Below, in pieces: positions 31,902-48,206 of a stretch of DNA of 51,987 nt. The DNA is from Octopus bimaculoides. Taxonomy: Eukaryota. The position numbers and the translations under genes are program-made. Numbering within the stretch: position 1 is the first letter of the stretch; the number at the start of each line of letters is the position of its first letter. The notes below the pieces were generated by a model. That model saw only the letters and a program-made list of their open reading frames with translations, was not told the origin of the DNA and made no database searches. The stretch is from the NCBI RefSeq assembly GCF_001194135.2, contig NC_068986.1, forward strand, positions 85,084,392-85,136,378. The letters run 5' to 3'.

Positions 31902-32079
31902 TCAAACAGATTTCTTTTCTTGCTTCAAATCGTTTGACTGTCTGTCGTTGATGTTTTTCAGCCAAGTATATAAAGGGTAAAAATAATTCAAGATTGGTCG
32001 AGATGAAATTGTTGCCGTTCCAGTTAACCTCTTCAGAGATTGAGGCCATGAAAAACTGGAACCGAGTTCCATGAAATCT
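31902..32079 (-). CDS. ACE: ACE-like terminal coding exon F ([20 protein letters not shown]...[27 protein letters not shown])
   Basis: Not in the ORF track. Acceptor atattttacag|A GAT; matches ACE MKLGFSRPWP...YFKPLLDWL; stop TGA. Confidence 0.93.
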
Positions 32080-35000
32080 CTGTAAAATATAGTAAAATAA
32101 AATATATTCAGTAATTTAAAATATTATTAATGATAATGGTAATAATGATGTCTTACTTAGGCAAAAGGCCATAATTTTTAGATAGAAAAAATAAGATCAT
32201 GTGATATTCATTCGTTCTTTTAAAACAGAGTGATGTAGGAAGAGGGTGGTAGGTGACAATGAGAGCTATGGCCAACTAAAATTTGTAAATAATATTTTGC
32301 CAAACCAAAGGCGGTGAGCTGACAGCATCATCAGGACGCCAGGCAAAATGCATAGCATTATTTTGTGACTAGATGTTCTGAGTACAAATTTCGCAAAGTT
32401 CGACTTTGCTTTCATCAGTTTGAAGTCGACAAATTAAGTACTAGTTGAGTGCTGGTCGGTGTAATTGAGTTACCCCCTTCCCGAAATAGCTGGCCTTGCG
32501 CCAAAATTTGAAGCCAATATTTACCAAAGCAAAATAATATATTTGTGCTAATTAGAGGCTTAGGTCTGAAATTTGTTGGTCTTGGTAAAAATATCCATTA
32601 ATTTTCGTACATGTACATTAATTTGCTCAATAATTAACATCGTATTGACTTTAAGCTTAGGCAATCAATCATAAATCGTAATCAGCTGCATACAGCTCAC
32701 TCTATATAACTACGCGAAATGCAGAGAATTATTTTGGAACAAATTGATTGAGTCTATTCTGCATCGTCAAACTGAAACTCAGAGAGAAAGGGGGGAATGG
32801 GGAGAGATGGGGAGTGGAGAGAGAGAGAGAGAGAGAGAGAGAGAGAGACGGAGGGAGGAGGGGAGTGGGGAGAAAGAGAAGGCGAGAAAGAGAGCATGTG
32901 TATATATATATATATATATATATATATATATATATATATATATATATATATATATATATATGCATATATATGTGTATGTGTGTATGATTGTTTATATGTA
33001 TGTGCTTGTATATGTAAATGCATGAGTATATAATTAAACATATACGTACATATGGATACATGCACACACACACACACACACACACACATACACACACACA
33101 CACACACACACACATATATATATATACATATGCATGCATGTATCATGCGTATGTGTGATTGCTTGTTCGTAAGTATGAATGTATGTAATACTGAAATTAT
33201 TTTACTTACAAAAGCTTAGCTCCAACCTCTTTAGTCCCAGCGATGTCGCAATGTTGGATAGGAATATTTCTTCCTGTAATTTGACAGAGTTTCTCATGTA
33301 TCTGATACTGCAACACAGTGCTGAAGAAATACCTAGAAAGGAAACACATAGATGTAGAATGTTGGTTGCCTTAGTTATCTATGCTATCTTTACACACACA
33401 CACACACACACACACACACACACACACACACACACACACACACACACACACACACACACACACACACACACACACACACACACACACGCACACAGACACA
33501 CAGACACACACGTATGTATGTATGTATGTATATATACATATATGCATGTATATATGTATGTATGTAAATATGGATACTCTCGTCTCCGCCGTGAACACAA
33601 ATTAATCTTCTCCCTTCGTTCCTTTGCGCTTTTTGGGCCCAACGTGCTACTTCTGCACACAGATTCTGACACTACTCCACACAGATTCCCACACACCTTT
33701 CACATTCACCTGCCTCTCCCCTCCATCTACAGACCTGTATACCGTATACCTCACCACGTACACACCACTATACAAACACCCATACACTCTGTTCAAGTCA
33801 TTACTCACTTCGCACACTACTACACACACACTCACAAACACTTTCCCCTCCACACACACTACTACCCAACACTTCTCATCGGCCACATCACACATCATTA
33901 TCCAAACATCCAAAAACCATTATCCACACACGCGCACACATTATTCAAAAGCGCCACCACACATGCCACTATACGAGCAGCACTACACACTGTTCAACTC
34001 AATCACATAGCACAATCATGTACACTCCCACACCCACACAAACATACAATGCCTGAACACAGACAATATATGCACACACACGCGCAACACGCATAAACAC
34101 ACGCAACACGCATAGACACAGGTAACACAGATAGACACAAATAACTTTCGCCCACAAGCATGCACTATATACATGCACACTCTATGGTCACAGAATCACA
34201 CACACATACAAACGTGCACACACCACATGAACAAAGACACCTCAAATGCTAAAAACAAGCGTTTGCAACGCATGCGCATACGCACACACACTTGATAGCA
34301 CATTTCCACTCTTCCACACTCTACTTACACATATACACATGACCATAAGCGCATACACTCACAAATACGCCAGACGCACATCACTTCACACAACATATAC
34401 AATAGGTCCCTTGTACACATACACACACCCAGGCCAATGCATTTGTACACACACATGACGACCGCACACATACATACACATGTTCAAATGCTCACATACA
34501 TACATACCAGTACATGTAACGCATATTATTCCACATAATATACGCACTGGGTCACTAACATACATACACACACGCAATGAGGTCCACTTATTTTTCAGCT
34601 CACCCCCACATACATAGTCACAGACTCATCCCCATTCATAAATACAACCCCCACACACGCCATTTTCACATGAGCAAGCGCGCATGAGAGCGAATTAGTT
34701 CAACCGGGTCACTGTTATTACTGTTATTATCTCCCTTTATTCAGCCTCTTTCTTCTGGCTATTTTATCGTGTTGAACCGTTAACCACTACACATATTTTT
34801 CTCTCACGGTTTTTTTTTTCTTTTCATTCTCTCTCCTTTTTTCATCTTCATCTTTTCTATCGAAGAGCGTTGGCTCGAAAAGTAAAGAAGACTATTACAA
34901 TTGCTTGTTACTAAAACACCTGTCTTCGACTTTTGCGTTCTGTAAATCTGATATAAATATATATATATAATTTGTTTGGGGAATGTGTGGGTGAGTATGT

Positions 35001-47000: not shown

Positions 47001-48206
47001 CTTTCCAAAAGAAAACAAACTCGATTGAACTTAACTTAACTAATAATATAACCAATTCTAAGTGAATTACACTATTTCATAATACAAAAGTTAATAATTA
47101 AAACACTCCATACGTGTTAAATATTTGTTATCCATACAAGCTTTAATGTTAAACTTATAAAAGTAATTTAATAGGTAATACTAAATTATACTTATTAAAT
47201 CAGAAACTAATAAAAGAATACCTATAATTAACAATTATTATTAAAAACCTTGTTACGATCAAAGCTAAATATATAACCGTTTAAAAGATAATATAAAATA
47301 TAAAGTTTTACCACTTACATGTTATCTAGACGCGGAGACCACCCCCTTCTGTCATGAATGACGATGTTATTGCAGTTAGAACGTTCCCCTCTGAGGTACA
47401 AGTCCGGGCAAGGTTGTTTATGGAAGATCAGCAGTCACCCATGCATAACAAACTCACCACTCCATGCCACCAATGTTGTCCAAAGGAAAGGCAAAGGCCA
47501 ATACAGCTTGGCACTAGTGACGTCGCAACTAATTTCTACAGCTGAGTGAACTGGAGCAATGTGAAATAAAGTGCCTTGCTCAAGAACACATCACAGCCTG
47601 GTCCTGGTATCGAACTCACTACTTCATGACTATGAACCCAACGCTCTAACAATTGAGCTATGCGCCTCTACATATGTGTGTGTATGTGTGTGTGATGTGT
47701 GTTTGTGTGTGTGTATGTGTGTGTGTGTGCGTGTGTATGTGTGTGTGTGTGTGTTCGTCTGTTCTTACATTCCTGTAACTTATTAGTTCGACAATAATGT
47801 CGATAGAATAAGACATGCTTTAAAAAAATAATAATATATACTGGGATCGATTTATCCGACTAAAAATTCTTCACGGTCGTGCCCCAGTATGGCCGCAGTC
47901 TAGTCACTGAAATAGGTAAAAGATAAAAGATGAAAGATTACCTGAAGTCCCTCTTCCTGTGAAAGTCAAACGCTTTAGGATGACAGTCCATCTCGGTTAA
48001 TTGATTTTTGAAAATAGAATTCCTCCAGAACTTTGGCATCATAGGATTAAGACCGATCGATTCATAGAACTGCTCGGCTTTTTGTTGAAGCTCTGTTGGT
48101 GTCAGGGACTGGTTATTGATTATTGTATCAAAATCCTCTTTCGTATTAGACGGGAATGGTCGAACGATCGGGAAAATATTACCCCATGCTTGAGCCCACA
48201 TATCAC
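31902..48206 (-). CDS. ACE: ACE-like peptidyl-dipeptidase (peptidase M2), 3' half; spliced CDS of 6 exons, 5' exons outside the window
   Basis: Manual splice join of 265+233+145+99+123+178 nt keeps one open frame to TGA at 31904-31902. Product: [12 protein letters not shown]...[20 protein letters not shown]...HHEMGH...DEAVGD...[11 protein letters not shown]...KWRWRVY...YQGIHPP...DFDPGSKYH...PYIRYF...LC...CDI...ELGSSFSWP...WLKN...KKSV*. This is collinear with the ACE catalytic domain. Confidence 0.96.
32306..32520 (+). mobile_element. SINE family A in the last ACE intron
   Basis: aaaggcggtgagctgacag...gactttgctttcatc...gccttgcgccaaaatttgaagccaat. Confidence 0.8.
33210..33332 (-). CDS. ACE: ACE-like exon E ([40 protein letters not shown])
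   Basis: Not in the ORF track. Acceptor tttcctttctag|G TAT, donor CTT TT|gtaagt; 123 nt, phase 2 to 2; retains the LC...CDI disulfide pair. Confidence 0.96.
36130..36535 (+). mobile_element. Penelope-like element fragment (RT-to-GIY-YIG linker) in an ACE intron
   Basis: [17 protein letters not shown] matches the PLE SKRQPxNLKxLLTxAKF motif; CGTCQCM remnant follows. Confidence 0.75.
36642..36740 (-). CDS. ACE: ACE-like exon D ([33 protein letters not shown])
   Basis: Not in the ORF track. Acceptor tgtgtttcag|A TAT, donor ATC AG|gtaaca; 99 nt, phase 2 to 2; contains the ACE DFDPGxKxH and PYIR motifs. Confidence 0.96.
37746..37890 (-). CDS. ACE: ACE-like exon C ([48 protein letters not shown])
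   Basis: Not in the ORF track; found by reading the minus strand. Acceptor attttaag|AA AGA, donor ATG AG|gtaaga; 145 nt, phase 1 to 2. Confidence 0.95.
38142..38331. repeat. Inverted repeat: 53-bp arms around a TA/TATG microsatellite loop
   Basis: 38142-38194 is the reverse complement of 38279-38331 with 4 mismatches. Confidence 0.95.
40877..41109 (-). CDS. ACE: ACE-like exon B carrying the HEXXH motif and the third zinc ligand Glu
   Basis: Acceptor tttttcttgccag|A GTC AAA ATG TGT; encodes [55 protein letters not shown]...; donor TAC A|gtaaat; 233 nt, phase 2 to 1. Confidence 0.95.
41793..43295 (+). mobile_element. R4/Dong-like LINE 3' half ending in a (TAA)n array
   Basis: [14 protein letters not shown]...INT; [15 protein letters not shown]; RHDR...HW...KNF...[12 protein letters not shown]...DGNRPGI; ...[13 protein letters not shown]; 3' UTR; (TAA)n at 43224-43295. 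Confidence 0.9.
43320..45113 (+). mobile_element. Two further R4/Dong-like fragments (about 43320-44085 and 44095-44970) ending in (TAA/CAA)n
   Basis: [11 protein letters not shown] (RT catalytic motif); RGGRGLIGC; a second copy of the AINT...DRRTRKL region; [17 protein letters not shown]; array at 44973-45113. Confidence 0.88.
45260..45652 (+). mobile_element. Two tandem SINE family A copies
   Basis: Truncated unit 45260-45430 and full unit 45440-45652, both ending gtgccaaaatttgaaa. Confidence 0.85.
45890..46175. repeat. Compound trinucleotide repeats (GAT/GAC)n and degenerate (GTG/GAT)n
   Basis: Seen directly. Confidence 0.9.
46372..46535 (+). mobile_element. SINE family B, 5' half
   Basis: ggcatggctgtgtagtaag...ggttcagtcccactgcgtggc...gaagaagccc followed by (TA)n. 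Confidence 0.8.
47343..47647 (-). mobile_element. tRNA-derived SINE, family C
   Basis: Minus head aggcgcatagctcaattgttagagcg...gagttcgatacc and central gtgttcttgagcaaggcactttatttcac...ctcagctgtag. Confidence 0.85.
47740..47935 (+). mobile_element. SINE family B, 3' half, next to the exon A donor
   Basis: gatagaataag...gggatcgattt...cgactaaaa...ccagtatggccgcagtc...actgaaataggtaaaaga. Confidence 0.75.
47942..48206 (-). CDS. ACE: ACE-like exon A (GDMWAQAW...[15 protein letters not shown])
   Basis: Acceptor tttcag|GT GAT ATG TGG; donor TTC AG|gtaatc; 265 nt, phase 1 in and phase 2 out; matches ACE GNMWAQTW...CHASAWDFYNGKDFR. Confidence 0.95.

Follow-up and report, generated by a model that had tools for sequence, protein, structure and literature searches.

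We analyzed a stretch of the Octopus bimaculoides genome of 51,987 nucleotides (RefSeq assembly GCF_001194135.2, contig NC_068986.1, positions 85,084,392 to 85,136,378; 37% G+C, 13 N runs), here called the window. An earlier reading of the DNA letters alone, referred to below as the original prediction, had proposed that it encodes a peptidase related to angiotensin-converting enzyme (ACE), with an intact catalytic core and remodelled specificity pockets. Stop-to-stop reading and inspection of the DNA gave six exons on the minus strand, from 48206 to 31902, that splice to an open frame of 347 amino acids (Table 1). The acceptors of all six exons are pyrimidine-rich AG sites, the donors of exons 1–5 read GTAA(G/A/T), and the exon phases are compatible. 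The spliced product is identical in 347 of 347 positions to residues 292–638 of XP_014768719.1 (A0A0L8HWW2), "angiotensin-converting enzyme [Octopus bimaculoides]", 638 amino acids long. The window region is hence the 3' part of the XP_014768719.1 gene. With the full protein as tblastn query, residues 1–291 had no match in the window, i.e., only the C-terminal 54% is present. The window holds no second ACE copy, and a screen of it for other genes gave only weak transposon fragments.

Three assembly gaps lie in the span of the gene, and microsatellites and repeats abound in the window; both would suit a pseudogene or an artefact of joining across gaps. However, the exons flanking each gap are collinear, share a strand and fit in phase, the six-exon frame is open with canonical splice sites, and the RefSeq match is exact. 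The spliced product aligned end to end with human ACE, with small indels only. Moreover, intron positions are identical in the Argonauta hians orthologue, whose last six exons measure 265, 236, 145, 99, 120 and 166 nt compared with 265, 233, 145, 99, 123 and 178 nt in octopus, i.e., the lengths are equal or differ by whole codons. From the unbroken alignment with human ACE, the Argonauta exon pattern and the complete RefSeq identity we conclude that no coding sequence was lost in the gaps. As the gene is also under purifying selection (see below), a pseudogene or artefact is extremely unlikely and, as far as sequence can tell, already refuted.

Table 1. Features of the window (positions count from its first letter; residues in human testis ACE numbering unless stated otherwise; a slash marks an exon boundary).
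Feature	Position	Strand	Description
Exon 1 within the window	47942–48206	-	265 nt, entry phase 1; splice sites TTTCAG/GT..AG/GTAATC; tblastn identity 100%; residues 292–380 of XP_014768719.1
GDMWAQ (exon 1)	48190–48204	-	Q281
CHPKAF (exon 1)	47968–47985	-	C352, H353, A354P, S355K, A356, W357F
Exon 2	40877–41109	-	233 nt; zinc-site exon; carries C370
Helix preceding HEXXH (exon 2)	41058–41096	-	Two-residue insertion, E376Y, L378W, V379N
HHEMGH (exon 2)	41040–41057	-	H383, E384, H387
AVDEAVGD (exon 2)	40956–40979	-	F409V, H410D, E411, D415
Exon 3	37746–37890	-	145 nt; ends with most of WWKMR (W485); R489 codon divided by the following intron
DKIPTMIF (exon 3)	37832–37855	-	D453, K454, F457T, P459I, F460
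Exon 4	36642–36740	-	99 nt; ends with I518, P519, Y520, R522 (R522 codon shared with exon 5)
K511, Y512, H513 (exon 4)	36665–36676	-	
Exon 5	33210–33332	-	123 nt; Y523, F527T, F531Y
C538 (exon 5)	33272–33286 region	-	Disulfide pair with C550
C550 (exon 5)	33236–33250 region	-	Disulfide pair with C538
Exon 6	31902–32079	-	178 nt; last coding exon; TGA stop 31904–31902
Assembly gaps	38571–38785, 39549–39818		Exon 2–3 intron, non-coding; flanked by (TG)n/(TA)n microsatellites
Assembly gap	35443–35751		Exon 4–5 intron, non-coding
Retrotransposon remains	41860–44500	+	Degenerate; in the first in-window intron, strand opposite to the gene
Open reading frame	43327–43737		Weak RVT_1 reverse transcriptase match, E 7e-4, under the Pfam cut-off
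(AAT)n/(ATT)n tracts	43190–43330, 44930–45160		Long tracts
Short interspersed repeat family	13415–15343, 23007–23166, 45322–45637, 48765–49653		About 100–210 nt; copies 62–93% identical
Tandem copies of this repeat	49030–49641		Three copies, just upstream of the first in-window exon
Direct-repeat pairs	1888–2157/2798–3067, 3572–3871/4761–5060, 22673–22926/23184–23437		250–300 nt, 97–100% identical
Gaps at the direct repeats	2158–2534, 22433–22671, 23497–23994		Adjoined or spanned by the direct-repeat pairs
Open reading frame	4470–5000	+	Endonuclease/exonuclease/phosphatase-like, E 5e-4, under the curated cut-off
Transposase fragment	50237–50371	-	Mos1-type HTH_48, E 1.4e-3, under the curated cut-off

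A predicted secreted single-domain M2 peptidase

The window protein scored 416 bits with Pfam Peptidase_M2 (PF01401), for which the curated cut-off is 23 (profile positions 241–576 of 581, E 3e-124). Its best relative of solved structure was the C-domain of human ACE (cACE), i.e., testis ACE (tACE), with E 2e-100 and 44% identity over the fragment, followed by the N-domain and ACE2. The N-terminus of XP_014768719.1 is a typical signal peptide (MMNIQLYTVMVLLMCAVLFSSLTHSS). Its stop codon lies about 25 residues past the peptidase domain, and it lacks the hydrophobic C-terminal tail present in the canonical ACEs of octopus, cuttlefish and Lingula. Because a signal peptide is present and a membrane anchor is not, XP_014768719.1 is best read as a single-domain M2 peptidase that is predicted to be secreted and soluble.

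An AlphaFold model of the Argonauta orthologue, calculated from a 55-sequence alignment, had a mean predicted local distance difference test (pLDDT) score of 93.4 and a predicted template modelling (pTM) score of 0.93. The model matched human cACE with template modelling (TM) scores of 0.93–0.94 at a root-mean-square deviation of 2.0 Å, so that, via its orthologue, the window protein is assigned the M2 fold, an all-helical ellipsoid in which the active-site channel is buried.

RefSeq, UniProt and EukProt already list the gene model, and the annotations of O. sinensis, O. vulgaris and A. hians include its orthologues. The enzyme that the original prediction called undescribed is therefore so biochemically, but not as a gene. 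We had ourselves considered an unannotated gene while word-indexed protein searches omitted the 100% identical O. bimaculoides protein, and dropped this idea once a profile search with the window and Argonauta sequences listed XP_014768719.1. Absence from a word-indexed search is hence not absence from the database.

Catalytic, docking and chloride-binding residues

We mapped residues through alignments of 120, 232 and 41 sequences, with tACE numbering carried over from the human tACE construct (tACE number = index + 39). The octopus protein keeps Q281, C352, H353, C370, H383, E384, H387, E411, W485, R489, K511, H513, Y520, R522, Y523, C538 and C550; D415 and K454 are likewise kept, and V380 is the same as in human ACE. 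Every residue listed as retained in the original prediction was found as stated. The zinc site is complete, with HEXXH and the downstream glutamate E411. Both the ACE-type dock Q281/K511/Y520 and the H353/H513/Y523 set are present in the window protein and in five of five members of the clade described below, in which all 17 core residues are intact; of the 232 M2 domains sampled, only 92 keep the full set.

Both chloride sites also have their ligands, i.e., R186, W485 and R489 of site I and Y224 and R522 of site II. R186 and Y224 were taken from the full-length public protein, where they lie outside the window together with E162. The probable cuttlefish orthologue has an asparagine at one ligand of chloride site II (Y224N), the sole exception among the catalytic, docking and chloride residues of the clade.

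Remodelled substrate-binding subsites

Crystal structures define the S1 subsite by S355, F512 and V518, S1' by A354, A356, V380, H353 and H513, and S2' by K511, Q281, Y520, N277, H383, Y523, F457 and F527; residues specific for cACE are T282, V379, V380 and D453 (PMC12820606). The octopus protein carries A354P, S355K, W357F, V379N, F457T and F527T together with a two-residue insertion before HEXXH, all as originally predicted. We found H410D, F409V, E376Y, L378W and P459I in addition, at better conserved positions that the prediction had missed, and S1 also differs from human tACE by F512Y and V518I.

How unusual these states are was read from the alignments. A354, S355, W357 and F457 are conserved in 68%, 83%, 75% and 72%, respectively, of the 232-domain sample. 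In the set of 120 sequences, K355 and W378 are absent except in Argonauta, and few other sequences share P354 (n = 7), F357 (n = 2), Y376 (n = 1), D410 (n = 2) or T457 (n = 0). Position 527 is variable throughout the family (F in 25, H in 25 and R in 24 of the 120 sequences, besides others), and position 379 is variable, too. V379N and F527T, which the original prediction counted as remodelling, are therefore real changes that mean little alone.

An unbiased screen for positions that are conserved in at least 85% of the family and altered in both octopod sequences added F409V/I, H410D, P459I/L, N482T, F531Y, L419M and P344. The window protein and Argonauta share 14 of 14 signature residues, and the next best sampled sequence has five. 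Moreover, 14 residues separate C370 and H383, compared with 12 in 194 other M2 domains; within this set, a spacing of 14 was found only in the window and Argonauta. It recurred in the probable cuttlefish orthologue, which was found later. MAFFT had placed the insertion of the cuttlefish sequence elsewhere, and an ungapped comparison of the 14-residue segment recovers Y376, W378 and V380.

Common to the whole clade are P354, F357, Y376, W378, V380, D410, T482, Y512, I518, Y531 and the two-residue insertion. All members have lost F409 (V/I/L), F457 (T/S/M) and P459 (I/L/A), and they have a small residue at position 527 (T/A). K355 is confined to the octopods, whose motif is H-P-K; in its place, the cuttlefish sequence carries the H-P-T of ACE2. 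Contrary to the outcome that would have refuted the original prediction, the substitutions are not common among mollusc ACEs, with P354, K355 or T457 in none of the nine others first checked. F357 was seen outside molluscs in one Helobdella-like sequence and recurs in a second mollusc ACE group.

A probable coleoid lineage apart from canonical ACE

The same genome encodes a canonical ACE, XP_014771274.1 (630 amino acids), with A354, S355, W357, H410, F457 and a hydrophobic C-terminal tail. It is 52–64% identical to other canonical ACEs and 37% identical to XP_014768719.1. In the C-terminal half, canonical ACEs of molluscs, a brachiopod, echinoderms, chordates and arthropods share 48–72% identity with one another, mostly above 52%, and the window protein about 41–48% with any of them. 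Its orthologues in O. sinensis and O. vulgaris are 96.6% identical, that of Argonauta hians 67.5%. Furthermore, a protein of 644 amino acids with 52% identity is encoded on full-length transcript contigs of 2.1–2.6 kb, in a cluster of 27 near-identical members from RNA-seq assemblies. One of these contigs stems from run SRR25158146, and runs of the same series hold a canonical ACE with 93% identity to the one from the cuttlefish Acanthosepion pharaonis. The 644-residue protein is hence the probable sepiid (cuttlefish) orthologue. As it comes from RNA-seq contigs, we conclude that the lineage is transcribed.

In Argonauta, the model of the orthologous gene (580 amino acids; BAAFZT010000068.1) starts inside the first helix, without a signal peptide. 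A few open codons (EGTAELN) stand upstream of it behind a possible AG acceptor (region 9940–10123), and its 5' end is probably short by one exon. A search for a signal-peptide exon upstream of this model gave no clear result.

Neighbour-joining of the full-length sequences (500 bootstraps) placed the three Octopus sequences, Argonauta hians and the probable cuttlefish in one clade with 100% support, whereas a grouping with canonical cephalopod ACE received 0%. The alignment and tree thus agree with the divergent paralogue proposed in the original prediction. Deeper placement of the clade was weak, with 25% for a position beside the second mollusc ACE group. Neighbour-joining of the C-terminal half grouped it with other long branches (a Diadema-like sequence, a scallop PK protein and ACE2) at less than 45% support, which we took as long-branch attraction. 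Octopus and cuttlefish are about equally far apart in both paralogues (0.74 and 0.69), so the extra divergence lies on the stem of the clade and does not reflect ongoing fast evolution. Compared with Argonauta, the rate of nonsynonymous substitution (dN) was 0.20 and that of synonymous substitution (dS) a saturated 1.5, with a dN/dS of 0.13 over 333 codons.

Could this be an ordinary mollusc ACE orthologue, with substitutions that are lineage variation of no functional meaning? The wide variation at positions 379 and 527 and the presence of F357 in the second mollusc ACE group would agree with it. However, the canonical orthologue is the other O. bimaculoides gene, XP_014771274.1, with A354, S355, W357, F457 and H410, and the 14 signature residues are complete only inside the clade, the next best sampled sequence having five; we therefore consider an ordinary orthologue very unlikely. 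A paralogue lineage in octopods (Octopus species, Argonauta) and, by inference, a cuttlefish, distinct from the membrane-anchored canonical cephalopod ACE, is likely as part of our overall best explanation. The analysis establishes how the gene is built, which protein it encodes, that it is conserved and under selective constraint, and which fold an orthologue has.

Comparison with other M2 peptidases

With human tACE (PDB 1O86 and related structures) the octopus protein shares family, fold, zinc ligands, E384, Y523, H353/H513, the carboxylate dock, chloride ligands, V380 and both C-terminal disulfides. Unlike tACE, it has no transmembrane anchor and differs in S1 (S355K, F512Y, V518I), in S2 (H410D, F409V) and in S1'/S2' (A354P, E376Y, L378W, V379N, the two-residue insertion, F457T, P459I, F527T). 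Canonical cephalopod and mollusc ACEs, i.e., XP_014771274.1 and the oyster enzyme CgACE, are likewise single-domain M2 proteins with the same catalytic and docking residues, but have a C-terminal anchor and A354/S355/W357/H410/F457 where the window protein has P/K/F/D/T and no anchor. CgACE is a proven dipeptidyl carboxypeptidase that is sensitive to chloride and inhibitors and C-terminally anchored, and in the literature found, this canonical enzyme is the only mollusc ACE characterized so far (PMC3235092).

The soluble ACEs of insects (Drosophila AnCE and Acer) resemble the octopus protein in being secreted, single-domain, anchor-less paralogues that occur side by side in a genome, with different subsite residues and a different response to inhibitors. 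In contrast to this general likeness, they arose by independent duplications and have no specific relationship to it in the tree, and the cephalopod signature residues are absent from the sampled arthropod sequences.

ACE2 of shark, platyfish, lamprey and owl has P354, T355, T457 and T527 together with R281, L511, F520 and Y518. The original prediction had seen an ACE2-like state in the proline only, which holds for P354; T457 and T527 are ACE2 states too. As A354P, F457T and F527T are ACE2 states while Q281, K511 and Y520 stay ACE-type, the pocket is a hybrid and, judged by its residues, better described as an ACE dock with a partly ACE2-like lining.

In ACE2, R273 and the L and F in place of K511 and Y520 restrict the enzyme to removing one residue. 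An ACE2-type monocarboxypeptidase that releases a single C-terminal residue would be favored by the vertebrate ACE2 states at 354, 457 and 527, by D277 and a stretch LEKWRW that resemble ACE2, and by the ACE2-like H-P-T motif of the probable cuttlefish orthologue. However, the octopus protein has no equivalent of R273, i.e., position 281 is Q and not R, K511 is not L, Y520 is not F, and I518 is not Y. It scored 339 bits to the ACE C-domain compared with about 284 bits to ACE2, and had no supported tree grouping with ACE2. A membrane anchor and a collectrin-like domain are both missing (PF16959 was listed for bird ACE2 matches, but not here). We hence regard an ACE2-type enzyme as improbable. 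The dock residues, R/L/F in vertebrate ACE2, fit dipeptidyl carboxypeptidase activity and not that of an ACE2-type enzyme, as originally predicted.

The rare pair P354-K355 is shared by two degenerate proteins, Ylistrum balloti XP_060075066.1 and domain 2 of Bulinus truncatus KAH9499518.1; the scallop protein, with its P-K-A-F motif, also has F357 and S457/T527. Zinc or catalytic residues are lost in both (e.g., H383S, E384Q, K511V, H513Q and Y523K in the scallop), in contrast to the octopus protein, which keeps all, and judged by these losses the two seem to be non-catalytic relatives. The trees supported a shared ancestry with the cephalopod clade only weakly (12–21%). Such relatives, and the unusual K355 and D410 beside the metal site, raise the question whether the octopus protein itself might be a catalytically dead, binding or structural pseudo-enzyme. 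However, zinc, catalytic, docking and chloride residues were kept through the divergence of octopods and cuttlefish, with the Y224N of the cuttlefish excepted, which is unexpected without selection for catalysis, and dN/dS is low at 0.13. A pseudo-enzyme is thus quite improbable.

The second ACE group of gastropods and bivalves (Patella, Gigantopelta, Pomacea, Physella, Mya, Dreissena, Tegillarca, Mytilus) has Y224 replaced by L or Q and R522 by S or C. It also has S518, often F357, and a kept catalytic core. These residues suggest a chloride-independent subgroup of mollusc ACEs.

Repeats and transposon remains in the window

Outside the ACE exons, the window holds repeats and transposon remains (Table 1), among them degenerate retrotransposon remains in the gene's first in-window intron and a short interspersed repeat family. 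Positions 1–31000 held no further convincing gene, and ARAGORN found no tRNA in the window. The nearly identical direct-repeat pairs adjoin or span gaps and may be assembly duplications.

Proposed function and specificity

We propose that XP_014768719.1 is probably an active, secreted M2 peptidyl-dipeptidase whose subsites have changed their preferences. Its activity and specificity, its dependence on chloride and its role in physiology are predictions here, drawn from the sequence and the known human structures. Zinc would be held by H383, H387 and E411, with E384 activating the water molecule and Y523, H353 and H513 stabilizing the transition state. Q281, K511 and Y520 would grip the free C-terminal carboxylate of the substrate, so that a C-terminal dipeptide would be released. 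With ligands at both sites I and II, the enzyme would be expected to depend on chloride.

On the best-supported reading, S1, S2 and S1'/S2' were rebuilt early in coleoid evolution and then held by purifying selection. S1 would have been rebuilt by S355K in octopods and by T in the cuttlefish sequence, S2 by H410D and F409V, and S1'/S2' by the two-residue insertion and E376Y/L378W before HEXXH, loss of the F457 aromatic, P459I and the small residue at 527. K355 and D410 would put charges beside S1 and S2, and the lost aromatic pair F457/F527 together with the altered helix before HEXXH may give a larger, more polar S2' site. The enzyme would most likely trim extracellular peptides, with P1 and P2' preferences unlike those of canonical ACE, and proline-mimetic ACE inhibitors would be expected to bind less well.

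Several points weigh against an active dipeptidase with retuned subsites. Pro354 removes a backbone NH, and K355 and D410, which adjoin the zinc site, could disturb rather than retune catalysis. Given Y224N in the cuttlefish sequence, chloride site II may not extend to the whole clade. The assignment of that sequence to a cuttlefish itself depends on a shared sequencing-run series, and the N-terminal half of the octopus protein lies outside the window, its residues being read from the public protein. The structural support consists of confidence values and fold matches. In a literature search for the XP_014768719.1 paralogue by name, tissue and accession, we found no enzymatic, expression or localization data. 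An O. vulgaris 'ACE' transcript stands in a list of nociception candidates, in which the paralogue is not identified (PMC12919962).

The proposal of an active secreted dipeptidase can be taken further. The coleoid paralogue might combine the ACE dock, an enlarged, polar and partly ACE2-like S2' and the charged K355/D410 to a specificity seen in no characterized M2 peptidase, serve a cephalopod-specific task, e.g., to process or inactivate certain neuropeptides, reproductive or secreted salivary peptides, and be largely insensitive to classical ACE inhibitors. We consider this possible, though unlikely.

Significance

In other phyla, divergent copies of ACE are a common occurrence. The octopus gene, already annotated, adds an uncharacterized member to an established family and is no new kind of system; the several ACE paralogues of insects are a parallel. 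The ACE family is a standard example of peptide specificity and drug selectivity that depend on a few subsite residues. A natural enzyme with the carboxylate dock of ACE and an ACE2-like and charged lining would be a useful comparative data point, and its conservation through the divergence of octopods and cuttlefish adds to its value. Its importance would rise if the hybrid pocket gives a specificity new among M2 peptidases. If our proposal is true, cephalopods would have a second, secreted peptide-processing enzyme for their neuropeptide, reproductive or secretory physiology.

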